A stretch of 64,000 nt of DNA from Selaginella moellendorffii (GCF_000143415.4 NW_003314263.1:808165-872164); one strand, 5' to 3'. Shown: positions 10,698-51,778, counted from the first letter of the stretch. Notes: generated by a model not told the origin, from the letters alone. Numbers and translations: made by a program.

Positions 10698-11805
10698 CTC
10701 CCCCCTCCCCTTCCCTCTTGAGGAATACATGCTTTAGGCTTTTACCCTAGCCATCCTTAATACCAAGAGTTAAGTCTCTAAGACTAATTTGAAACTTACT
10801 AAATATATAATGGTGCTAAATTGTGAATTTGGGCATGGGACAAACACTATTGTGTTTAGGACAATTTTTACATTCCGTAGATATGCTAAATTGACAAATC
10901 TAGACACTTTCCATAAATAGCAATTAAAACCGAATAGAACTAACACAAAGTGCATGATAGCGAGGATGTTTGATAGACACAGTAAGCTATTAATTAACGA
11001 ATATTGAGGGACCAAACTCAATATCACAGGGGTTCCCAACACTAGCAAGTGCAAGTCAACAAATGAGTTTCTTTAACCAAATCAAGTATGTTTGACTAAT
11101 AGCATTTAGGAATTCCACCCTTATACTCATATGGTCAAGTGCACACGTGAAGACCAATTTCTCAACTAGCTTAAATGAAGATTGAAAAAGGGACTAGTAA
11201 TACCGACCTCCTGCCATCATAGCAATAAGGAAAGAATATCCAAAAAGATTAGCCGATAGATAACTTTCGATACCCGCAATCACATTCACGACATCTAACC
11301 TCCTTATTCCAATAAGCAATCTTATAAAGTTAGCTTCCACCATTTCAATCAATTATACCAAACTTTTATCTAGTTATTTTATAGTCATTAAGTCCTATAA
11401 CTCATTGTTAGTGCTTTCACACCTTTATCAACATTTGGTCAAAGCACTTAAATCCCTTACCTTCCAATTTAGACTATGTTAATCCCATTTCTATTGTGGT
11501 TCTTTTCATAAACTAGTCAGTTTGACCTCCAAACATCTCTTCTTCAGATACTTTATATCTCTACACTATTGATTTTACAAGCCTATCCTCATGACACATC
11601 CACTTGTGTCTAAATCTTTGCTAAGACCATAATAATTGTTTCTTATGCTAACTACTATTTAGCACTGCATTATAGTGTTCAAACATAACTCTTCATAAAA
11701 GTTAATTTCTTTTGTGAACACCTTTTCACAACTTTAGTATGCCATCTTCTACTATCAATAAAATACTTATTATTTTCATATTTGAACCTCATGATTCTTG
11801 TAATT

Positions 11806-12381
11806 TATAAACTCCTAAATTTGGACTTCCCAAGAGGTCACCTAGCCTAGTATTATTCAAACCCAATGACATTTAACCCCAAGTATCCTAAAACCCTTAA
11901 CCGATTAGAAAAGGGGATGCACTCTTGTTCATGGGCACTTTCCCTCTATATTTGAAACCTTATGGATCGTCTCTCGAATTATTCTCTTTGGTTGCTTACA
12001 ATCCACTATGCTTCCCTGTAAGTTTACGCCCTTGTGAATGGAAGCTAAGAGCCGCAGCTGTTCTGAGAGCCCTGCTCTTTTGACACCCTACCCCTCGGGT
12101 CGAGCTTAGCCGGGAGCAAACTAAACCTACCAAATGTCAATCAACATGTGGTGTGATTCCTTTAGCCAACCAATAGAGTCGAACTCAAGACCCCTTTAAT
12201 ACCAAATGTAAACTTTTAAATTTGGACTTCCCAGCCCAATACTATTCAAACCCAATGACGCTTAACCCTAAGTATCCCAAGACCCTTAACAAATTGAAAA
12301 CACTCTTGTTCATGGGCCTTTTCCCTCTATATTTAAATTCTTATAGATCGTCTTTCAAGTTGTTCTCTTTAGTTGCTTACA
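11806..12381 (-). mobile_element. Old Cassandra-type TRIM (LTR-internal-LTR)
   Basis: Reverse complement of the 15494-16078 unit with many transitions. Flanks TAATT/TAGTC look like a decayed 5-bp TSD. Confidence 0.85.
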
Positions 12382-13275
12382 TAGTCCTTCACTAGGTACA
12401 ACACACTTTAGTTCAAACATATTTCTTCCAAGCAATTAGAACCATCTTATAACTCTACTAAGTTATCTAGTTTTTAGACTTTGCTAATCCAATAACCCAA
12501 AATGTCCTTGCCTCATGATTACTTTTGAGGTGTTACCACACTTGAATACAACCTTTGTATTTATGTTTTATTCATAAAAATCATATTTATTCTAACACTT
12601 AATTATTATTTGTTCTATGTAGGCTACTTTTACCTCTTAGAATTATCCTTCTACATCATAAAAATGCCAACTCATCCTCTAAATACACCTCTAACTCCTT
12701 AGATGGTTTTAGCATTGATTAAAGGTAGCCTTAGCTACTATTGCAAGGATATATGTTCTTGTCTATATTTGACCTCTTATGGTCATTAGCTCCATTCTCT
12801 AATTCTTGAGCACCATTCTTAATCATATGAGCATAATTTTATAACTCCTTTATTGTCTAGGAGTTTCTATTATTCTTGTGATCCCAACTATAGTTGTTTA
12901 CCACAACTATATTATCTAGTTTGTTATGTCAAATATTTATATGGATCATATCCTCAACTTTTTTAGGAAATCTTTTTTACTATTCCTAATATCCAAAGGC
13001 TATTCCTTTATTAACCCCTTTCTATCCACCACATTGCATACATGTTCACATATAAATTAAAGTGGAGAGCTATACCTTCCAAACACATTACTCCTCAAGG
13101 ATAAACCCACTTCTGGGACCGTCCGATATTAATATCAAATAGTGATATACTTTACTATCAATAAGAGTCAGATTAAGGAATAGTTCTAATACCAAATTGT
13201 AAGTGACTAAATTTTTTATTTGACTTTAATCACTTAACAATGCCTTTGACATTTTGAAGGAGTTTCACTTATATT

Positions 13276-13868
13276 TATAAGCTTATGAATTTGGACTTCC
13301 CGGAAGGTCACTTAGCCCAATACTATTCAAATCCAAAGACACTTAACCCCAAGTATCCCAAGACCCTTAATCGATTAGAAAAAGGGGTGCACTTTTGTTT
13401 ATGGGCCCTTTTCCTTTATATTTGAACATTATGGATCATCTCTTGAGTCGTTTCCTTTGGTTGCTTACAATCTACTACGCCTCCTTACAAGTTCACGCCT
13501 TCGTGAATGGAAGCTGAGAGTCGCAGCTCTCCCGAGAGCCCCACTCTCTTGACACCCTACCCCTTAGGTCAAGCCCAGCCGGGAGCAAACTGGATCTTCC
13601 AAATGTCAATTAACATGTGGTGTGATTCCTTTAACCAACCAACAAAGTTGGCTTAAGACCTCTCTAATACCAAATGTAAGGTCCTGAATTTGAACTTCCC
13701 GGGAGGTCACCTAGCCCAATACTATTCAAACCCAATGACGCTTAACCCTAAATATCCCAAGACCCTTAACCAATTGGAAAAGGGAGTGCACTTTTGTTCA
13801 TGGGCTCTTTCCCTTTATATTTGAATTTTATGGATCGTTTTTTGAGTCGTTACTTTTGGTTGCTTATA
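13276..13868 (-). mobile_element. Old Cassandra-type TRIM (LTR-internal-LTR)
   Basis: Two LTRs and an ~205-bp internal domain with PBS/PPT. Flanks ATATT/ATATC (TSD with one mismatch). Confidence 0.88.
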
Positions 13869-15493
13869 ATATCCTCCATAGGTTCTTATTTGCATTGGGG
13901 TACTTGCTTACTCCTAAATGTGATCTCAAGATCATATCAACTTTGCACTTAGTCTAAGTGCTCCATGTGTTTAGTTTCATTTTTAAGACCCAAAGGTACT
14001 ATCAATATCTTAGCCTGTTATGTGAAAGCTATATTTATTTGCCCTTGTCTCATTAGTAATCTAAGACCACCCACAATATGGTCCCATCTCTTTGAGACTG
14101 GGCCATCTATTTATAAGTGGTCATCTCATAACAATATCTTAGCATCTTTAGGATGACCTAAGATATAAGGAACATCACCCCTCCAATATCTTTTTTTCGA
14201 TTTCCATGAAATTTCTTTCTGTCTATAGCAATGCTTGCTAACACCATTATTAGTGTTGGGCCTGAAGGCTTATTTTCTTTCCATAGTCTGGGATTTTATG
14301 ATGACATTTCAAAACACTATAGCCCAATGCAAGCCACGTGGGTACTACCCCCACTTTTTACCACTAGGGTGCCCCAACTTATGTGGCTAGAGTGAGGCTC
14401 CAATAAGCCATACAAGGTATCCAAGTAAGTAGTGCCACTCACACTTGGATTGAGTGTATTGACCATCCGTTTTCTTGAGGGAGTTAAAGTTAGCTTTTGA
14501 ACACTTCACCAAATTACCCCACTTATCCATCCATGTTCACTTTAGACTTTGACTCCTTGATGGTTTTATCATCACCCACCATATAGGTGTAACCTTCCTT
14601 GGTCATACTGGCTATTCCTGGCTAAATTAATTCCACTAAAGACTATCTCATAAGGATTCACCAAAACCCCTAGGTTCTGAGAGACAATTGCTTGGGCTTT
14701 CACCCTTGAATTCAGACTTAAACTCAAACTCAAACTTCGACTCAGAATCAGACTTGGTTTTAGATTGGGTCTCGGTCTCAATCTCAGTCTCAGACTCTTT
14801 CCCAAACTCTGCCTTCGGGCTTCATCTTGGATTCCTTCTAGGACTCCAACTTGGACTCCTTCTCAAACTTCATCCAAACTCTTTCTTAGATTCCATTTGG
14901 AACTCCTTATATTCCTTCTTGGACTCCATCTCAACCATCTTGAACTCCATCTTGGGCCCAATTTTGACAATTCCGCAAGTTACAACACTCATTATGTGTT
15001 GGTGATTTTCTTATCCCCTTTTCAAGACTCACTTCTCAATTGCTTCATGCTTCATGCTTCATGTGCTTCATGCTTCCACTAAAAATTTTTTAACACTTTT
15101 TTGGGAGTTCCATTCTTGCTCTCGACTTCCCAAGTTAAAATTTTTAGTCTAAACGTGTTATGCTTATTTGGCTTTTGTTTTGACCACTACCATATGGCAT
15201 ACTTTGGGGTCCACTTTGGGACTAAAGGATTTGTGTCTCAATTTTAGGACTTTCAACCTCACAACCAGAGCAACAATCAACTAAAATAAATTTGTAGGAA
15301 TAAATTGGTGGTAACCAGGCATCAAGTCTTGGAGACAAGATATTAACTTCTAGTGGCTAAAACTAGGGGAAGATACTAAATACTTGGGGATTCAGATTGA
15401 TACTAAGTTAGTGTAGTGCTTCAAGATGACACCTTGCTTTGGAGGATAAAAACATCAATCCAAAAATGTGCTCCCAAAAACTCGGCTTCCCAG

Positions 15494-15688
15494 TGTAAGC
15501 AACCAAAGGGAACGACTTGAGAGACGATCCATAGGGGTTCAAATATAGAGGGAAAGGGCCCATGAATAAGAGTGCACCCCCTTTTCCAAACGGTTAAGGG
15601 TCTTGGGATATTTGGGGTTAAGTGTCCTTGGGTTTGAATAGTACTGGGCTGGGTGACCTCCTGGGAAGTCCAAACTCAGGAGCTTACA
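15494..15688 (+). repeat. LTR1, containing a 5S rRNA-derived internal control region (about 15616-15671)
   Basis: GTTAAGTGTCCTTGGGTTTGAATAGTACTGGGCTGGGTGACCTCCTGGGAAGTCC matches the plant 5S segment GTTAAGCGTGCTTGGGCGAGAGTAGTACTAGGATGGGTGACCTCCTGGGAAGTCC (A box to C box; recalled consensus). Confidence 0.92.
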
Positions 15689-15690
15689 TT

Positions 15691-15701
15691 TGGTATCAGA
15701 G
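15691..15701 (+). promoter_or_regulatory. Primer-binding site for initiator Met-tRNA
   Basis: TGGTATCAGAG located 2 nt after the terminal CA of LTR1. Confidence 0.9.
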
Positions 15702-15894
15702 GGGTCTTGGGTCCGACTCTGTTGGTTGGCTTAGGGGAATCACACCACATGTTGATTGACATCTGGCTGGTCCAGTTTGCTCCCGCTGGGCTCGACCCGA
15801 GGGGTAGGGTGTCAAGAGAGCGAGGCTCTCGGGAGAGCTGCGGCTCTCAGCTTCCGTTCACGAGGGCGTGAACTTGCAGGGAAGCGTGGTGGAT

Positions 15895-16078
15895 TGTAAG
15901 CAACCAAAGGGAACGACTTGAGAGACGATCCATAGGGGTTCAAATATAGAGGGAAAGGGCCCATGAATAAGAGTGCACCCCCTTTTCCAAACGGTTAAGG
16001 GTCTTGGGATATTTGGGGTTAAGTGTCCTTGGGTTTGAATAGTACTGGGCTGGGTGACCTCCCGGGAAGTCCAAACTC
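15895..16078 (+). repeat. LTR2, lacking its last 11 nt and fused to the antisense gag-protease ORF
   Basis: Matches LTR3 up to ...CCAAACTC, then switches to gypsy protease-coding sequence. Confidence 0.9.
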
Positions 16079-17491
16079 TATAGTCCTTGGTTCGCCTAGC
16101 CGCTGCACCGTTAGTCCGGCTTGCCGGACTATGTCTGCAGCCACAAAATTATCCGAAGCACCCGTGTCAATAAGGATCTTAACAAAGCTACCTCCGAGCT
16201 TCCCTCGGAGGGCTAGTAGATGTCGCGAACGACTCTCTACCAAAGTTGCTCGTGTAATGAGTAACTTTGAGTTAGGGACTGGATCACATACCTCAGTTTG
16301 GACTTCACCCGACTTGATGGCCATATTGGCTCTGGCCTTCTTCGGGTAGGGACATTCCCTCGAGAAGTGTCCCACTTCGCCGCAGTTGTAGCATACGTTG
16401 TTGCCCACGCTGCTATACGACTTGACCTTCTTATCCGTGGGTTTGTCTTTTTTCGCTTGGCTTCCCCACGTACTCGCTCGCTGGCCACTGGCTTTGCCTT
16501 TCCGGAACCCCGAGGACTCATTCTTAGAGAAACTCTTCTTGAATTTCCCCTTGCTATATGTTCCCCTCGGTTTGGCCCCTTTGTGAAACGTGGATCCCGA
16601 CCCCGTCGTGTTCCCCTTTCGCAGGTTATCGTTGAAATGCACCTTGATGGCCGCATCCAACGCTTCCTTGTAGTTGGTCGGGTTCCAGCGCATCACCTCA
16701 CCGCGAGCCCAGGTTTGCAAACCTGATATAAAGGCATGGAACGCATCCATATCCCCCATGTCCGTGACAAGTATCCTCTTTGCCATGAACCCATTCACAT
16801 ATTCCTGGATGGTTCCAGTCTGCTTCAGCCTACTCAACTCATCTCTTAGATGCAAAGTGGCATTCGGAGGAACGTATATCGCGCGGATCCTCGCCTTCAT
16901 CATGTCCCAGGTGGCCACCGGTCCTTTGTTGGCCTCCGTTGTTCTCCACCAAGACTTGGCATTATCTGCCAAGTATGGTTTTGCACATGGGACCTTCTCC
17001 GAGCTCGGTAACCGCAACGCTCGGAAGTAGTCCTCCATATCGTAAAACCAATCCTCCACAACCTTATAGTCGTTCACTCCCTTGAACACCGGTGGGGGCT
17101 TTGGTTTGTACTTGGGAACTGCCTGAGGGACTGATTCCACTTCGGTCTGTTCGACCTTGTCTGGTTTTGCCTCAGTCCCTGCCAAAGGGTCCGCACCTTC
17201 TGCGCTGCCAGCATCCGCAGTCTTTCGCTTTTTCTTCCGCTTCTCGTCACGCTTTAACTTGCGTACGAGAGTCTCCAGCAGGGCATTAGTCTGTGCCAAC
17301 TGTCCTTCTAGCACGTCCAATCGAGCCTTGGACGACCGAACCTCGCCACCGGACTCCTGTTTGGAAGTTTCCTCACTGGAGTCCTCCTCATGCAAGGATT
17401 CCTCATCCATAGCCTCTTGTTCAACCGGAGGCTCCAGCTCCGGCGGAGGTTCCGTCTCCGCCTGGGTTCGCTTACGCCCTGCCCTTGCCAT
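16019..17491 (-). CDS. gag: Ty3/gypsy Gag (capsid + CCHC knuckle) with the N-terminal half of an aspartic protease, 490 aa
   Basis: Retrotrans_gag-like region (AKSWW..., LKQTGTIQEYVNGF, AFISGL), knuckle CYNCGEVGHFSREC and LIDTGASDNFV. The last ~20 codons and the stop come from LTR2. Confidence 0.93.
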   Translation of the reverse strand: MARAGRKRTQAETEPPPELEPPVEQEAMDEESLHEEDSSEETSKQESGGEVRSSKARLDVLEGQLAQTNALLETLVRKLKRDEKRKKKRKTADAGSAEGADPLAGTEAKPDKVEQTEVESVPQAVPKYKPKPPPVFKGVNDYKVVEDWFYDMEDYFRALRLPSSEKVPCAKPYLADNAKSWWRTTEANKGPVATWDMMKARIRAIYVPPNATLHLRDELSRLKQTGTIQEYVNGFMAKRILVTDMGDMDAFHAFISGLQTWARGEVMRWNPTNYKEALDAAIKVHFNDNLRKGNTTGSGSTFHKGAKPRGTYSKGKFKKSFSKNESSGFRKGKASGQRASTWGSQAKKDKPTDKKVKSYSSVGNNVCYNCGEVGHFSRECPYPKKARANMAIKSGEVQTEVCDPVPNSKLLITRATLVESRSRHLLALRGKLGGSFVKILIDTGASDNFVAADIVRQAGLTVQRLGEPRTIEFGLPGRSPSPVLFKPKDT

Positions 17492-17529: not shown

Positions 17530-18409
17530 ATAAAGGCTCCGAACATCCCTTGGTACCACAAGACTTGTTCATGGGACCCTCTAAATCCCAAGTCTTGAGT
17601 GCAACACTTGCTTCGGGACGCCGGGGCGAAACACCGTGGCCTAACGGCCCGGTATGGGTACCTCTCGCCCCCCACTTCCATCCTGAAGGAAGGCCCAAGC
17701 CCCTAGGAAGGGCGAGGACCAATGAGCCGCATGGTACTCAAGTGGGGCACCACTCCACATGAGCCGGGAGCACCGCAATCGGTTTCCCTTTCGGGAGTGG
17801 GAGCTGCTCTTGAGCACTTCCTTGGATGGCCCCTCCGGCACCAGCCAAGTCCATGCTCACTCCCACCCAAGGCCCCTTAGTCCCAGTCCCAACCTCAAGT
17901 CGGTTTGGAAGCCCAACTGGAGAGTCCCTTCAAAACTGGTTCCTGGACCTCACTATCCCTACTATACTTTTGGAACCCCCTGCAGCCCCCCCCCCCTGGG
18001 GGACGCACGCTTTGGGCTTTCACCCCTTGACCCGTATTAGTATTTGGACTTAGTCTCTGGCTCGATCTCGGATCCGATTTCGGATCCGACTTCGGATTCG
18101 GTCTCGGACTCGATCGCGGACTCGATCTCGGACCCGATCTCGGGCCCGACCTCGGACTCGACTTCGGACTCGGTCTCGGACCCGATTTCGGATCTCGGAC
18201 TCCGTCTCGAACTCGGTCTCGAACTCGGACTCGAACTCGGTCCCCGAGTCGGTCTTGGACTCGATTCCGGACTCTATCTCGAACTCGGTCCTAGAGTCGG
18301 TCTTGGACTCGATCTTTGACTTGGTCCCATCCGATGAACTCTTTGTCATTTTGGTCATGCTTTCGGGGTTCCCTTAGCCTACGACACCTCGGCGAGTTGG
18401 TTCCTTACA
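17530..18409 (-). repeat. Internal gypsy LTR-like segment preceded by a PPT; contains degenerate hexamer repeats (18050-18320)
   Basis: Minus strand reads GGGGTGGTGGAGT|TGTAAGGAACCAA at 18409. A homologous decayed copy lies at 14300-15000. The 3' boundary and PBS are not clear. Confidence 0.6.
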
Positions 18410-18812
18410 ACTCCACCACCCCTAGAAGAAGTTCGATGCCCACATCGAACGTCTCTTTTTTATCCTACGACTTGTTGACCATGTCTCCGGGGGCATCCCC
18501 CCACTTAGCGGTGTGCCTAAGTTAGCCTCCCCGGCCAAGAGCTCATGACAATGGAATATAGGTGTCCCTATACTCCTCCCCTCACCACGCCCTAGTATGG
18601 GGTCGGGACTTGAACCCAGCCTTGCTTTACTAGGGGGTTGGGACTCGAACCCAACCTCCGTAGAATACGTCTACGGTTTCGACATCCCCGCAAGGAGTCG
18701 GGCGTAGCTCCCTACGCCTGGTCAACCTAGCTAACCCATGCTAATTAGCTTACCTTCGGCGCGCCATCGGGTCCCAACATATGCCATTGCTCAACTTCTC
18801 AAATTGATACTT

Positions 18813-20891
18813 TTAATTGAACTTTGCATAAGTACATAGAGTTCTGCCATGCAGAAATTCCTCCACTAGATCTCGCGCGTTCGCTAGGTTCTCCTCCGGT
18901 TCCCATGTTGCTTCGCAGTGTGGAAATCCTTTCCACTTCACATGGAACTCTCTCACCTCACGTCCTTGTCGCTTGCTCTTGCGCGCATTGAGGATGGCCT
19001 CGACTTCGTATTCCTCCTCCCCTTGGATAACCTCAGGTAAAGGTCTTACTTGGTCCTTGCGAAGCGGGTCCTCAAAATACGGCTTGAGTAAGTTTACGTG
19101 GAACACGGGATGCATCTTCCCCATCTCTCGAGGAAGTCGGAGACGGTAAGCCACTTTACCGATTCGAGCCTCAATCTCGTAAGGCCCCGCGAACCTGCTT
19201 AAGGAACTCAAGATCAATTCATTTGCAGGAATACATGCATTTTTACCTTTGGGTCAACTTCCGGCTGATCCCACTTGGTAGCCTGAGGTTCTTGGTGTTC
19301 AGCCACACCTTCTCCCTAGCTTGGAACTCCACATCTCGACGCTTTTGGTTCGCGTACTTAGTTTGCCTTTGTTGAGCCCGTTCCAAGGAATCCTTCACTA
19401 TATTCCAAATGTTGAGTCTTTCCGCCGTGAATGCCTCCACTGCGGGTAACTCTCCATGATACTCGGCCACGCCGAGTTCCACAGGACCTTCAATAGCTCG
19501 CCCATTGATGACTTCCCATGGACTCACCCCGATGCTCGAATGTGGTGAGTTGTTATAACACATTTCCGCAAGTCCCAAATGACTTACCCAGTCGGTCTGG
19601 TCTCCCGAGACATAGCATCGCAAATAATCCTCCAGCTGCCTATTCACCCTTTCCGTTTGTCCATCTGTCAAGAAGTGTTAATGCCATCAATCTTGACTCA
19701 ATACTCATTACCTGTCTGTGGGTGATAGGCCGTGTTGAATTTCAACTTGGTGCGATACTGTTCTAGGAGTGTCCTCCAGAACCTACTGGTGAAGATCTTA
19801 TCTCGATCAGAGATAATCTCTTCCGGCCTTCCCCGCACTCGAACCACTTGTTCGAAGAATAGCTTCGCCACACCTTCCGCATCCACATCCGTTGTGGTGG
19901 GTATGAAATGTGCCATCTTTGAAAATCGGTCCACCACCACGAATATCGCATCGAACCCCTCGCTTGGGGGTAGTCCCGTGATGAAGTCCATCGTGAGACA
20001 TTTCCACGGACGATCTGGAATGGGGATGCTTTGCAACAAGCCCCCACTAGCCTTCGTCACGGCTTTGACCTGCTGACATGTTGGACATGTCTTTACATAG
20101 TCTTGGACGTCCTTAGCCATATCTGGCCAGTGATACTTCCTTTTGAGTAAGCCCATCGTCTTGGGCACTCCGCCGTGTCCCGCGAGAGGTCCGTCATGAC
20201 ACTCTTCCAAGGCTACTTTCCTTAGTTCCCCTTCTGGAACATACACCCTCGTTTGCTTGTAATATATGAGTCCGTTGCGTTCCGCATAGCCCGTTTTCTC
20301 TTCCGTTGGCAGCTCACCTCTCTGGTGAGCTTCCCGCGCCTCCAGATTCCTCAGCAACACTTCTTGTGCTAGACCATCACTCTCGTATGCGGTCCGCACA
20401 TCGTCCCAAAAGGTTGCAGTAGCGCTAGATATCGCCAACTTCAAGCTCTCTTTTCGACTTAGCGCATCTGCCACGATGTTGCTCTTCCCAGGCTTGTACA
20501 GGATCTTGCAATCAAACTCGGCCAAAGCATTGGCCCACCGACCTTGTTTTCCCCTTAGGTCGGGCTGTGACAAGAAGTGTTTCGTTGCCACATTGTCCGT
20601 GTAAACCTTGAAGTGTCTCCCAAGGTAGTGTCGCCACTCCTTGAGCGCCTTGACCACCGCAAACAATTCCTTCTCGTGGGCAGGCCACTTCCGTTGAGCC
20701 TTGTCCAGCTTCTTCGAGAAGAACGCTACTGGATGGTTGTCTTGCTTCAAAACTGCGCCCAACGCAAAGTCCGAAGCATCCGTGTCTACCTCAAAGTCCT
20801 TACCAAAGTCTGGTAATGCCAACACCGGAGCCTTCCTCAACTTCCCTTTGAGGTGAATGCCATCTAAGCCATAAGTATACCATGACCCCAT
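18813..20891 (-). CDS. RNase H-integrase-chromodomain protein, 3 exons (20891-19712, 19664-19247, 19194-18813), 659 aa
   Basis: RH motifs DTDASDFALGAVL, EKELFAV, YTDN, ADALSR. Integrase HHCC and D-D-E motifs (MDFITGLP, ISDRD, QTERVN). GPY/F module. Chromodomain EYEVEAIL...VKWKGF...TWEPEENL. Removing GT-AG segments of 47 and 52 nt restores HPQT-DGQTER and KLTQ-RFAGPY. Confidence 0.85.
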
Positions 20892-21249
20892 GGACTCTTG
20901 CTTTTTTTTCCTTAGATTCCTTTGATTTATTTTTGTTTTGCTATGATAGACTTTCTCACCACTTTTGGTTGCAATGGACACCTATATCAATAACAATCAA
21001 CAATTTTTATTTTATCATCGTGGACTCCATGGCAATCAGTCCAAAGTCATTGGTGGCATGTCATTTTTAACACCCTTGATCCCCTGGTTGTTCACCATAA
21101 GCCTTGTTACCAAGTGGATTGCAATCATGAAGGCATGGCATCTTCACTTCTAGGACCAGAAAATAATGCCATGGCGGAAAGTGATAGAGCTCGATAACTA
21201 GTTAGTTGACGTTCACGAGGGTGTGATCTTGCAGGGAAGCGTGGTGGAT

Positions 21250-21444
21250 TGTAAGCAACCAAAGGGAACGACTTGAGAGACGATCCATAGGGGTTCAAAT
21301 ATAGAGGGAAAGGGCCCATGAATAAGAGTGCACCCCCTTTTCCAAACGGTTAAGGGTCTTGGGATATTTGGGGTTAAGTGTCCTTGGGTTTGAATAGTAC
21401 TGGGCTGGGTGACCTCCCGGGAAGTCCAAACTCAGGAGCTTACA
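21250..21444 (+). repeat. LTR3 (5S-derived), preceded by the last 40 bp of the Cassandra internal domain (21210-21249)
   Basis: Near-identical to LTR1 and followed by the TSD CCCAG. Confidence 0.92.
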
Positions 21445-21449
21445 CCCAG

Positions 21450-23700
21450 CAGCGAGAGTGGTTGTGGCCAAGAGCATCATTTTAGTACCACTTTTTGATC
21501 TAGCACATTCTTGAACACACTCCTAAATAGGTATGCATGATGGTATGTAAATTTGTGTGGCAAGGTATACTTGTTATAGGGAGAATCATGGTGAAAGTTG
21601 CCTAGCAATCCACAATACATTTGTGAGTCTTGGGAGGACTTGGAATTGTTAATCTGAGTGACATGGCAAAGGCACTATAGTACAAAATTCTCCCAATATG
21701 CCTTCAACTAGGTAATCAATTGTGAAGACTCATGTTTAGGCAAAGTCTACTAATGATCTGGCCTAGGCATTACATTGTGAGACAATGGGTGGAGGATTTG
21801 CATTGGCTTTTTGTTGAAGGGCCAAACAAGTGGTCAAGGGAGGCATATTGGTCCAAGTGATTTTGAGATTGTAGAGCAAGTTTCTAATTAATCAAGAGAT
21901 GCTAGGTGGGGCTGAAAATTGGCTGAACTAGCCTCTATTCTTTAACAATCTCTTCAAAGTAGATGGTAAGACATTAAGTAGGGAAGAGCACTACACCATA
22001 TAGAAAAAGCTACACTTGAGGTTTTCAAATTAATAGGGGTGTTGAACAAAGACATGAGGAAGACAACAAGGCATATGCAAGTCTTTAACCTAGGACAATG
22101 GAGGAAGGTTCACTTGGATCTTTTTTGCATCATCCAAGTAGTGAGCAAGGGAAAGAAAGGGAAACTTTGGCCAAGGCAATGTCTCAAACCTATAGATATT
22201 GTGGCTCTACAGCATGACATGGAATTGGATGGGGAACAAGTTAGACTAGGAGCTTGGACACAGGTATTTATGGCCCTAAGGAGGATGGCAATATGGAGGT
22301 GTGGTTTGTTGTGTCTCTAGAACATAATATTAATTGTCCCTTTTTGGTTGTGAGAGGCAATATATTGTTGTTGGCATGTCGATAGTGACAGATGATGAAG
22401 TCAAGGGGAGGATTCAAGTGGTAAGTGGTAGTTATTCAATTGATGGTCATGCTTGAGGGGGATGGCATACTCAACTAGTGGTGACAATAGTTGATTGAGC
22501 ATCTAGACTAGGATCCCTTAACATGGAAATGAATAGCAAAGAACTTCTTCTCATTTGAAGTCAATGAAGCACAAAATGGTCTCTTGACAAGTAAGGAGGA
22601 GGTCTATGGGGAAAACCCTAAGCTATGGAAGAAGTGGATTTAGCAAGGAGTCAAGGCAAACCAAGTGGTGAACAACATATTTACCTTCTGGAAACTACCA
22701 ATATAGGAGAAGGTTAAGACCACCTCTTGGTTGGTGGTGACCAATAGGCTACTAGTGGGATAGTGGTTTCAGGATGAAGCATGCTAACGGTGCAAAGAGT
22801 GTGGCAAACGAGTGTGGCATGTTCTGTGGGAATGTGATGTGGCGAAAGAGGTATGCAATAGATTCTCAAGATGACATAAGAATTAAAAGACATTCTAGAG
22901 TTCAAAGCTATTCTTTACTAGTTCAAAGGAGTAAGAGGTTTGGCTAATGGTCCAACTTGGAGATACATTCAGTGTTGAGGATGGCATGGATGAGGTATGT
23001 GAGTCTGGTGAGATATGACAAAAGCTAAAGTTGGCATGTTGGTTTGGGAAGTGATTGGCCATGAGTGTTGGGATAAAGAGTGACAAGAGTGCAAGCATTT
23101 TAGGAGGTGCATAATCACTATCATTTTGACAACATCTAAACAATAGTTTGATTGGTCATTGATCAAATGAAAGAAAGAGAGCGAGCTATGGATGTTTGAT
23201 AGTGTTATCTTTCTCTTCCTTTCGTGGTCTTTACACGGATGCTTCCAGAAATTATGTGGAGATCTTGCGGAGATGTGCCAAAATGCGGAATTGGTAGAGG
23301 GTGGCCTCGATTGTAGCCAGGATTGTGGAAACTTGCTGTGGCAGATGTATGCCAGGGGCGCTGTGGACGTTATTGCTAGGAGTGTACAAGGACTCCCAGA
23401 GGGGAGGATGAGTGGCACATTAGGTGTTTAAGCTGGATCTTGAGAGACTATATACATTGCTATGTTTGATATACAAGCTGCATGATCAAACTTGTCGTCC
23501 GGCAGTAGAAGTAAAACTCGCTAGTCGAGAGTTTCAAAACTCAAAAAGGTGGCCTCTACTTTTCATCCAAGCCGAGAATCATTCAGCAGTGATGGCAATA
23601 ACACTATTGTGCTGGAGGTCATCATTGAGACACCAAAACACTTTAGAACACCAGGAGGTGGTGTTTGGTGTTACGAAGGCAATAGATAAGGCCCAAGGGA
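21450..23700 (-). mobile_element. Decayed LINE-like remnant, probable target of the composite insertion
   Basis: Weak minus-strand RT-like words (HYLDD near 22130-22145, a PGPDG-like word near 22510). No intact ORF. Confidence 0.35.
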
Positions 23701-49003: not shown

Positions 49004-51778
49004 ATGGTCAGCGATGGAGGCCTGCGACTGCGAGAGAGGACGCGCAACATCTGTATCCTCGCCCACGTCGATCACGGCAAGACGACGCTGGCGGACCATC
49101 TCATCGCCGCCGCCGGCGATGGCGTCGTCCACCCCAAGCAAGCGGGTAAGCTTCGCTACCTCGACTTCCTCGACGACGAGCAGCAGCGCTGCATCACCAT
49201 CAAGAGCGCCTCCATTGCCCTCCGCTACCGCGATCACGCCATCAATCTCATCGACTCGCCGGGGCACATCGATTTCTGCGGCGAGGTCTCCACGGCAGTG
49301 AGGTTGAGCGATGGAGCGCTCGTTTTGGTGGATGTTTGCGAGGGAATCCACGTCCAGACCCACGCTGTGCTCCGCCAGGCATGGCTGGAGAGGGTGGCGC
49401 CGTGCTTGGTGCTCAACAAGGTGGACAGGCTCGTTACGGAGCTCAAGCTCTCGCCGCTCGAGGCCTACCGGAGAATGGAGCGGATCATCGCCGAGGTGAA
49501 CGGCATTGTCAGTGGCTTTCGATCCGAGAGCTACTTCTTCCGCGACGGAGAACAGCACGAAGAAGAGAGTGGTTTTGCGGACTTCTCTCCGGTGGCTGGG
49601 AATGTGGCCTTTGCGAGTGCTCTGGACGGGTGGGCTTTTAGAACACACGATCTTGTGGAAGTTTGCGAGATAAAGCTGGATCACTGTGTGACTGCTCGGG
49701 AGCTGGAAGAGAAGCTATGGGGGGACTTCTTCTTGGTAACAGAGGACAAGAAACACAAGATTGTGTCCGAGCAGGAGCTTCCAAACGGGGCCAAGACCGC
49801 TGCCCCCAACACGAGGAAGCCTCTGTTCGTGCGACTCATCCTGGAGAGCTTGTGGCAAGTTTACTCGTCGCTAGAGAAAGTTGGCGACGAGTCGGGAAAG
49901 ATCCTGAGCAAGGTGACCAACGTCATGAAGCTCTCGGTTCCAGAGCGAGAGCTACGAAGTGGAGGCAGGGCGTCTCTCCAGGCCGTGATGAGCCGATGGC
50001 TTCCACTCTCGGACAAGCTCCTCGACATGGTTGTCCAAGCTCTCCCGGACCCGGCTCGAGCACAGGCTTACAGAAGCAATCATTTACTCCCGCCAAGAGC
50101 AGCGTCGTCTTTTTCGACCCTGATCAGCCCGAGCCAGCAGCAACTTCTCGACGAGATTGAGCATGCACGAATGTCGGTAAAAAAGTGTGATGACAGCCGC
50201 GGAGCTCCTTGTGTGGTTTACGTCTCCAAGATGTTCGCGGTCCCGGCTTCGATGATTCCTCGTGGTCGAGGAGATGAAGAAGACGAGTGCTTCTTGGCAT
50301 TCGCGAGGGTGTTTAGCGGGGTCCTTGTTGCTGGCCAGAGAGTCTACGTGCTTTCGGATGTCTACGATCCAACCGTGGATACGGACAAACGGAGCTTTGA
50401 GGTGGCGACTGTCACGGCTCTCTACGTGATGATCGGCCAAGGACTCAAGCCCGTGGACAAGGCAGCGGCTGGAAACGTGGTGGCGATCCAGGGACTTGGG
50501 GAAGAGGTTCTCAAGACGGCGACACTTAGCTCATCTCCAAACTGCTGGCCACTCGCGGGCTTAAGTTTCCAGGCGGCTCCGATAGTGAGGGTGGCGGTGG
50601 AGCCGTCGAATCCTGCGAACTTGGCACAGCTTTTGAAGGGACTCAAGCTTCTCAACCGTGCCGATCCCATGGTCCAGGTGACTTTCTCGAGCACTGGTGA
50701 GTACGTGCTCTCAGCAGCAGGCGAAGTTCATCTCGAGCTCTGCGTGAAAGAGCTGAGGGAGAGGTTTGCTCGCGTGGAGCTTGAAGTCTCGGCTCCTCTG
50801 GTAGCATTCCGAGAAACCATTGACGACGACAGTGCGATCACGAGCGAGCGATCGGAGGAAGAAGAACAGGAAGAAGGAAGAAAGGAGAGATGCGTGAGCT
50901 TCACCACTCCAAACCGCAGGTACACAGGAAGTGTTGAGGTTTGGAGGCTGCCAAGCTCGGTGCTGGAAGCCATCGAGAGCTCGGGCCTCGTCAAAACCGG
51001 CAAGGAGACTTGTTGCTCCGAGACTCTAGCAGCTCATCTTCTCGCGAATCCAGCAACAAAGAGGGAGCTCTTGGGCGAAATCATCTGGTCGTGCTGTGGA
51101 GCCAATCTCCTCGTTTCATCGCCGGAGCTCCTGCAAAGCTGTGGCAGCGAGGAAGACAGTGCGAGCCTGGAGAGCAGCATTGTGACGGGCTTTCAGCTGG
51201 CCTGTACCGCCGGTCCGCTGTGCAAGGAGCCACTGTGGGGACTGGCCTTCAGGATCAAGGTGGCGACTTGCAGCAATGCTGGCCATGGTGGCGTTGAAAA
51301 CTCGGGACAAGTTATCAAGGTGATCAAGGAGGCGTGCCTGGAAGCAGTGGCGAAGAGAAATCCCAGGCTTGTGGAGGCGATGTACCTGTGCGAGGTGAGC
51401 ACAAGCTCCTTGTTCCTGGGACAAATGTATGGAGTTTTGGCGAGGAGGCGGGCGAGGGTGGTGAAGGAGGAGATGGCGGAAGGGAGGGACGTGTTTGCGG
51501 TGGTGGCGTTTGTGCCCGTGGCGGAGAGCTTTGGCCTGGCGGAGGAGCTGAGAAAGAGGACGTCTGGAGCGGCCAGCCCCCAGCTGCGGTTTAGTCACTG
51601 GGAAGTAGCCGAGGACGATGGAGATGATGAACTGGAGATGGCAGAGAGGGACGAAGAACAAGGAGGGGGATTTGCGAAGCGGTTGATTGACGCAGTGAGG
51701 AGACGAAAGGGATTGGCTGTCAAGGAAAATCTTGTGAGGCATGCCGCGAAGCAAAGAACCTTGGCTAGAAAAGTCTAA
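49004..51778 (+). CDS. EFL1: Elongation factor-like GTPase 1 (ribosome maturation, Ria1/EFL1), intronless, 924 aa
   Basis: NICILAHVDHGKTTLADHL, DSPGHIDF, NKVDRL, AAGEVHLE, PVAESFG, LRKRTSGAASPQL and C-terminal KQRTLARKV. Confidence 0.95.
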   Translation: MVSDGGLRLRERTRNICILAHVDHGKTTLADHLIAAAGDGVVHPKQAGKLRYLDFLDDEQQRCITIKSASIALRYRDHAINLIDSPGHIDFCGEVSTAVRLSDGALVLVDVCEGIHVQTHAVLRQAWLERVAPCLVLNKVDRLVTELKLSPLEAYRRMERIIAEVNGIVSGFRSESYFFRDGEQHEEESGFADFSPVAGNVAFASALDGWAFRTHDLVEVCEIKLDHCVTARELEEKLWGDFFLVTEDKKHKIVSEQELPNGAKTAAPNTRKPLFVRLILESLWQVYSSLEKVGDESGKILSKVTNVMKLSVPERELRSGGRASLQAVMSRWLPLSDKLLDMVVQALPDPARAQAYRSNHLLPPRAASSFSTLISPSQQQLLDEIEHARMSVKKCDDSRGAPCVVYVSKMFAVPASMIPRGRGDEEDECFLAFARVFSGVLVAGQRVYVLSDVYDPTVDTDKRSFEVATVTALYVMIGQGLKPVDKAAAGNVVAIQGLGEEVLKTATLSSSPNCWPLAGLSFQAAPIVRVAVEPSNPANLAQLLKGLKLLNRADPMVQVTFSSTGEYVLSAAGEVHLELCVKELRERFARVELEVSAPLVAFRETIDDDSAITSERSEEEEQEEGRKERCVSFTTPNRRYTGSVEVWRLPSSVLEAIESSGLVKTGKETCCSETLAAHLLANPATKRELLGEIIWSCCGANLLVSSPELLQSCGSEEDSASLESSIVTGFQLACTAGPLCKEPLWGLAFRIKVATCSNAGHGGVENSGQVIKVIKEACLEAVAKRNPRLVEAMYLCEVSTSSLFLGQMYGVLARRRARVVKEEMAEGRDVFAVVAFVPVAESFGLAEELRKRTSGAASPQLRFSHWEVAEDDGDDELEMAERDEEQGGGFAKRLIDAVRRRKGLAVKENLVRHAAKQRTLARKV

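Follow-up and report, generated by a model that had tools for sequence, protein, structure and literature searches.

The integrase gene of a high-copy Ty3/gypsy chromovirus of Selaginella moellendorffii is split by two inserts of 47 and 52 nt, and the evidence supports both as spliceosomal-type introns of a retrotransposon integrase: in DNA they occur throughout the family, and one contig of an RNA-type assembly lacks them to the exact base. Very probably, they are true U2-type mini-introns fixed in the family, which would use unspliced RNA as its template and spliced RNA as its integrase mRNA, the copy described here carrying them passively. This copy lies in a window of 64,000 nt (the whole stretch of DNA analysed), located on scaffold GL377567.1 of GCA_000143415.2, the v1.0 assembly of S. 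moellendorffii.

LTR retrotransposons replicate via RNA and are, therefore, expected to lose introns. Ogre and EVADE have been named as notable plant exceptions (PMC12786077). If the present reading is correct, a chromovirus of high copy number whose integrase has mini-introns beside the catalytic Glu would be a further and more extreme one.

The integrase frame and its two inserts

An open reading frame search of the minus strand finds a Ty3/gypsy RNase H-integrase-chromodomain frame as three open pieces in succession (table 1), of which the first matches the Pfam families RT_RNaseH, Integrase_H2C2 and rve, and the third SH3_Tf2-1 (GPY/F region) and Chromo. That two minus-strand inserts (19711-19665 and 19246-19195) interrupt the integrase, as stated in an earlier note made from the sequence, has been borne out by the open reading frames, the Pfam matches and the alignment with homologues. 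For the latter, each exon was searched separately, and eight intronless homologues from other organisms, with 43-48% identity over piece 1, were compared. All of them encode the integrase in a single open reading frame, which in most includes the chromodomain, and all are collinear over both joints, with zero gap and zero overlap beyond the split codon.

Intron 1 is placed four codons 5′ of the catalytic Glu, and translation without removal of the inserts meets a stop four codons ahead of that residue. After exact removal, the second Asp (in ISDRD) and the Glu of DGQTE are 35 residues apart, as counted on the sequence, D(35)E being the canonical spacing of DDE integrases. The RNase H, HHCC, DDE, GPY/F and chromodomain elements named in the earlier note are all found. 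The accompanying claim of one frame of 1980 nt (659 codons) after exact removal holds in its arithmetic when counted from the ATG at 20891, the exons of the long frame adding up to 1270+418+382 = 2070 nt, a number divisible by 3, but not in its start: this ATG belongs, together with the 126 nt that open the long frame, to unrelated low-copy filler (20856-21209) outside the element, so that the start of the frame is fortuitous.

The borders of intron 1 read ACAG/GTAATGAG...TTGACAG/AT and those of intron 2 AAAG/GTAAAA...TAAGCAG/GT. Both inserts begin with GTAA, end with CAG and follow an exon ending in AG, and thus conform to the U2-type rule (5′ GT and 3′ AG within consensus-like flanks); TTAAC in intron 1 and TTGAT in intron 2, read by eye, are candidate branch points. 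The GC content of the inserts is 0.35-0.36 versus 0.50-0.51 in the exons, and, across the 2,043 nt of the element's coding part, 47-nt windows with a GC content of 0.38 or less are found only at both inserts and at the stop-codon region. The sequence GACAG at both ends of intron 1, previously taken as a hint of gain by insertion with a target duplication, is too short a repeat to argue it, since CAG is expected both at the exon end and at the 3′ splice site and only two further bases match.

The size and composition of the inserts (47 and 52 nt; GC 0.35-0.36) are comparable with those found in a host gene for carbonic anhydrase in the window, for which three introns of the GT-AG type were inferred, of 74, 53 and 81 nt and with a GC content of 0.22-0.38. 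They also fit the introns of S. moellendorffii in general, which are reported to be short, with lengths that cluster with those of fungi and are sharply unlike those of other land plants (PMC6157073). A second host gene considered as an intron control, of the EFL1 type, is intronless. This GTPase gene (49004-51778, plus strand) is a single exon of 924 codons, and its product shares only about 50-55% identity with named plant proteins (54% for Diphasiastrum).

Table 1. Features of the gypsy fragment and of the Cassandra-type unit around it, in positions of the window.
Feature	Position	Strand	Remarks
Target-site duplication	15489..15493 and 21445-21449	+	CCCAG, left and right copies
Cassandra first LTR	15494-15688	+	195 bp, 5S-like segment
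Cassandra PBS	15691	+	TGGTATCAGAGG; internal region to 15894
Cassandra second LTR	15895-16078	+	without last 11 nt
gag (CCHC knuckle) and protease start	16079..17491	-	cut at Cassandra LTR junction
Gypsy own LTR	17556..18409	-	TGTAAGG start at 18409; 12-nt tandem repeats, poly-G tract
Gypsy 3′ untranslated region	18410..18812	-	about 400 nt, two tRNA T-arm-like hairpins, PPT
Gypsy polypurine tract (PPT)	18423-18411	-	aggggtggtggag
Piece 3	19217-18813	-	RFAGPYEIE... to gene end, chromodomain
Piece 2	19671-19243	-	TDGQTERVN...KLTQR, then stop
Piece 1	20981-19698	-	ends ...AYHPQT, then GNEY-stop
Exon 3	18813..19194	-	GPY/F (SH3-like) module and chromodomain, stop codon included
Intron 2	19195..19246	-	52 nt, GT..AG, phase 2, GC 0.35, immediate stop
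Exon 2	19247..19664	-	integrase core, D-G-Q-T-E (catalytic Glu) to ...KLTQ + AG
Intron 1	19665..19711	-	47 nt, GT..AG, phase 1, GC 0.36, stop after 4 codons
Portion of exon 1 in the window copy	19712..20855	-	RNase H, HHCC zinc finger, both Asp of the integrase core, ...AYHPQT + G
Filler	20856..21209		354 nt, AT-rich, low copy: DNA depth 0-50 versus about 1,000,000 for the family
Cassandra internal tail and 3′ LTR	21210..21444	+	last 40 nt (PPT), complete LTR 21250-21444

RNA and DNA reads over the joints

Four sequencing runs were compared over positions 18320-21500, namely two DNA runs (X1 and X4, the latter carrying a second organism label), an RNA-type assembly (X15), the RNA nature of which is the guess of a tool, and a raw RNA run (X22). 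The counts of X1 are saturated, and joints were judged among the best-supported ones listed, so that rare intronless copies in DNA could have escaped notice.

In the RNA-type assembly, a contig of 1083 nt (X15 record 9) aligns in three blocks that directly adjoin one another on the contig, namely 20037-19712, 19664-19245 and 19192-18856. What it leaves out is exactly 19665-19711 and 19193-19244, the latter being the same 52 nt as intron 2, shifted by the ambiguous GT. With 38 differences from the window copy (about 96% identity), the contig comes from another copy of the family; among the 27 differences listed of the 38, 20 are synonymous and 7 non-synonymous, an excess which indicates that the exons evolve as coding sequence. 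Furthermore, the assembly covers the coding part evenly at about 9x and leaves the LTR uncovered, although the LTR is the most abundant part in DNA, a pattern that agrees with an RNA origin.

In DNA, the summed depth of X1 over the element is about 0.6-1.3 million, with per-site values of 0.50-0.57 million in the introns versus 0.66-0.94 million at nearby exon sites, and intron 2 is bridged by a contig of X4 (record 16) that shows 2 mismatches over 162 nt. Over the gene, X22 has only about 10 raw RNA reads, a number too small to reveal a joint or to speak against splicing; none of them contains a splice joint, and one lies inside intron 2, deriving from either unspliced RNA or contaminating DNA. 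The search for spliced RNA across both junctions that the earlier note had called for gave an exact skip of both inserts in one assembled contig and no joint among the few raw reads. The splicing reading rests on one RNA-type contig, and the evidence is thin but exact.

The same data could be read as ordinary small insertions in a dead, non-autonomous sub-lineage, the intron-free contig then representing a separate, intact lineage and no splicing taking place. The guessed RNA status of X15, the raw RNA reads just described and a published description that found no intact copy (PMC3350952) would all be compatible with such a history, which we nevertheless consider improbable. It would need two independent inserts that both happen to have GT, AG, an AG at the preceding exon end, AT-richness, the size of host introns and a base-exact absence elsewhere, and it is at odds with the preference of X15 for the coding part over the LTR that abounds in DNA. 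Moreover, the simplest origin of a DNA lineage free of introns would be retrocopying of spliced RNA, so that splicing would be implied again.

Structure of the locus

The domain set of a chromovirus is found by Pfam in the gypsy part (CCHC gag, protease, RNase H, HHCC-DDE integrase, GPY/F and chromodomain), and the reverse transcriptase is missing from the window copy; a tblastn search for a second copy of the integrase pieces within the window gave none. The window copy is a dead, truncated and circularly permuted fragment, consisting of RNase H, integrase and chromodomain, one LTR, gag and the start of the protease. Opening of either a one-LTR circle or a tandem pair within the protease-reverse transcriptase region would produce such a permutation. 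At 18409, where the LTR starts, the DNA contigs of X1 diverge into many different flanks; the 3′ end of the LTR is approximate, having been set just before a degenerate PBS-like sequence, TGGTACCAAGGG, recognized by alignment. A search for a tRNA-Met PBS with two mismatches allowed found one in the Cassandra part and none in the gypsy part.

Two adjacent tRNA T-arm-like hairpins, GGTTCGAGTCCCAACC and GGTTCAAGTCCCGACC, are found at 18600-18665 (minus strand) in the gypsy 3′ untranslated region. The number of these units seems variable, to judge from breaks at 18629 and 18662 in DNA contigs derived from other copies; ARAGORN predicted no tRNAs. The gypsy LTR contains, at 18034-18316, about 23 tandem 12-nt units resembling GACTCGATCTCG, beside which there is a tract of 13 G near 17990, and a similar short array is present at 14714-14785.

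The fragment, 4.8 kb long, is in reverse orientation between the second LTR of a Cassandra-type unit and the filler. This unit has the features of a TRIM (195-bp LTRs, a tRNA-Met PBS, a PPT before each downstream LTR and a 5-bp target-site duplication), its three LTRs are 99% identical, and its coding content is foreign. The 5S-like segment of its LTRs gave no match to the Rfam 5S_rRNA model at the gathering level; in a permissive search, its scores of 35.2 and 34.4 bits (E 2e-5 and 3e-5) came close to the gathering score of 38 but stayed below it, the 3′ half being clearly 5S-like and 32 nt of the middle of the model being missing. The low copy number of the filler in the DNA runs suggests that the chimera is unique.

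Within the Cassandra LTR (21373-21429), most RNA reads leave the LTR at 21373 and continue into true 5S rRNA sequence, so that cross-mapping of 5S rRNA accounts for most of the expression that this LTR seems to show. The window has two more complete TRIMs of the Cassandra type (11803-12397 and 13273-13883), which are in the opposite orientation and 81-87% identical to 15494-16078. Cassandra and the gypsy element have the PPT and LTR start in common (GTGGTGGA-TTGTAAGCAACCAA at 15870-15925, plus strand, versus GTGGTGGAGTTGTAAGGAACCAA at 18440-18385, minus strand) and similar PBS regions (TGGTATCAGAGGGGTCTTGGG at 15691-15711, plus strand, versus TGGTACCA-AGGGATGTTCGG at about 17556-17536, minus strand). 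These shared stretches fit the gypsy family as a possible helper of Cassandra.

The structure of the locus also bears on whether the gene might have been domesticated by the host, as a locally expressed gene with its own ATG and two introns for a 659-codon RNase H-integrase-chromodomain protein. The three exons are open, the splice sites of both introns are intact and the ATG at 20891 opens the frame, yet that ATG lies in the unrelated filler, and the fragment retains an LTR and gag and has very many near-identical relatives in its family. In addition, RNA reads are about one deep and not assignable to the window copy, and no gene model of such length and sequence was found in the protein collection. 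Domestication is, therefore, very improbable.

Introns across the family

The DNA depth of the introns is similar to that of the exons (about 0.5-1.0 million) versus 0-50 over the chimera-specific stretch at 20888-21208, which is, thus, shallower than the family sequence by a factor of thousands to about 10^4 in the DNA runs. It follows that nearly all intron-bearing copies are other than the Cassandra-flanked copy of the window. Homology among the family copies begins at 20855, where loose ends are seen in both X1 and X15. Beyond this position, 13 DNA contigs of X1 and the RNA-type contig of X15 share a common continuation, the reverse complement of which reads W-T-(V/A)-E-(C/R)-E-A-A-F-V, that is the linker between reverse transcriptase and RNase H of Ty3/gypsy pol. 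To judge from this motif, the other copies run upstream into a reverse transcriptase. Furthermore, the PPT, LTR, PBS-like site and gag that belong to the family itself have the same orientation as the integrase, which is, therefore, antisense to the foreign Cassandra LTRs only.

These findings contradict the explanation offered in the earlier note, namely that its antisense orientation relative to the LTR-defined RNA allowed the gene to gain introns and pass them on. According to that model, the RNA that is reverse transcribed is that of the Cassandra-bounded unit, in which splicing of the opposite strand never purges the introns, and ordinary gypsy copies should lack them. The gene is truly antisense to the flanking Cassandra LTRs and the whole unit of 5.95 kb is bounded by the CCCAG duplication. 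Against this stand the introns at family depth in DNA, where the chimera-specific stretch is single-copy or absent, the gypsy LTR in sense with the gene, the continuation into reverse transcriptase and the same breaks in the published canonical SM1-Galahad consensus (PMC3350952), so that the same introns do occur in canonical sense copies. Moreover, the plus strand has 23 runs of at least four T from the 5S-like start to the 3′ LTR, and Cassandra has been reported to be transcribed by polymerase III (PMC10886601), which such runs would presumably stop, making a full-length Cassandra-sense RNA of 5.9 kb unlikely. Retention through antisense orientation is, thus, the least credible of the alternatives, with hardly any probability left to it, and the position inside Cassandra explains nothing about the introns.

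Probable identity of the family and proposed mechanism

SM1-Galahad has been described in S. moellendorffii as a Ty3/gypsy chromovirus of the Galadriel clade, with hundreds of copies at about 95% identity, none of them intact, LTRs of more than 1 kb with poly-G tracts of variable length and a tRNA-Met PBS (Novikova et al. 2012, PMC3350952). Its open reading frames were given as one from gag to the core integrase, followed by two short ones, the last with a group I chromodomain of which the chromo box carries substitutions; the sister family SM2-Galahad has a single open reading frame (PMC3350952). The word ‘intron’ is absent from that paper, in which the breaks are read as separate open reading frames.

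The intron-bearing family fits SM1-Galahad, an assignment made by matching features. They share the three-frame layout, with the first frame ending inside the integrase core, the high copy number, LTR ends of the TG..CA type, a tract of 13 G and a substituted chromo box (F-H-V-K-W-K-G in the window copy). The fit is looser for the LTR, which measures about 855 bp in the window versus more than 1 kb, and for the degenerate PBS. Contrary to the published account, the breaks are here GT-AG segments that are exactly absent from an RNA-type contig. Searches of the protein collection with the exon pieces, together with an exhaustive representative search, retrieved nothing closer than 49-51% identity, and an exact-pattern scan of metagenome contigs over the joint of exon 1 and intron 1 gave 0 matches.

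In the mechanism favoured here, that of introns inherited by a sense-oriented family, the full-length unspliced RNA of a canonical copy would be the template for reverse transcription, by which the introns would be passed on. The same RNA would encode Gag, protease, reverse transcriptase and RNase H, together with only a dead integrase stub devoid of the catalytic Glu, while the spliced fraction would encode an integrase complete with GPY/F module and chromodomain. The efficiency of splicing by the host may then gate the supply of integrase, as in Ogre, and the unspliced RNA would probably be packaged selectively.

The wider proposition, that SM1-Galahad is a successful and possibly still active chromovirus for which splicing is obligatory to make integrase, and which gained its introns after the split from SM2-Galahad and inherits them via unspliced RNA, has, in our judgement, evenly balanced chances. 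If it holds, it would explain the reported lack of intact copies in the most abundant chromovirus of Selaginella and correct the published view, and it would offer an intron gain inside a retroelement that can be dated as later than the SM2-Galahad split. The family would also be a natural system for studying how unspliced RNA is chosen for packaging, and a window onto an integrase:Gag ratio set by splicing as well as onto the time and manner of intron origin.

Comparison with known systems

The unit that surrounds the fragment resembles Cassandra (Kalendar et al. 2008, to the extent covered in PMC10886601) in its 195-bp LTRs with a putative 5S-like segment, the tRNA-Met PBS, the PPT and the 5-bp target-site duplication. 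Unlike Cassandra, it has three LTRs, and 5.1 kb of foreign DNA, made up of the antisense gypsy fragment and the 354 nt of filler, takes the place of most of the second internal region.

With regard to the introns, the nearest parallel is Ogre of legumes (Steinbauerova et al. 2008, cited in PMC12786077), a plant Ty3/gypsy element the pol of which is also interrupted by a stop-bearing intron; spliced RNA alone gives the downstream pol products, and unspliced RNA must be the template for new copies. Ogre, however, belongs to the Tat lineage, and its one intron, which is much longer, separates the protease region from that of the reverse transcriptase, whereas the family in the window has two mini-introns of 47-52 nt inside the integrase of a chromovirus. 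Splicing also divides the RNA into different coding pools in EVADE and other Ty1/copia elements (Oberlin et al. 2017, PMC5580714) and in BARE (PMC3735527). In these, pol is spliced out, which yields a subgenomic mRNA for gag only, and the full-length RNA already encodes an intact polyprotein; the Selaginella family, in contrast, would need splicing to create an intact integrase.
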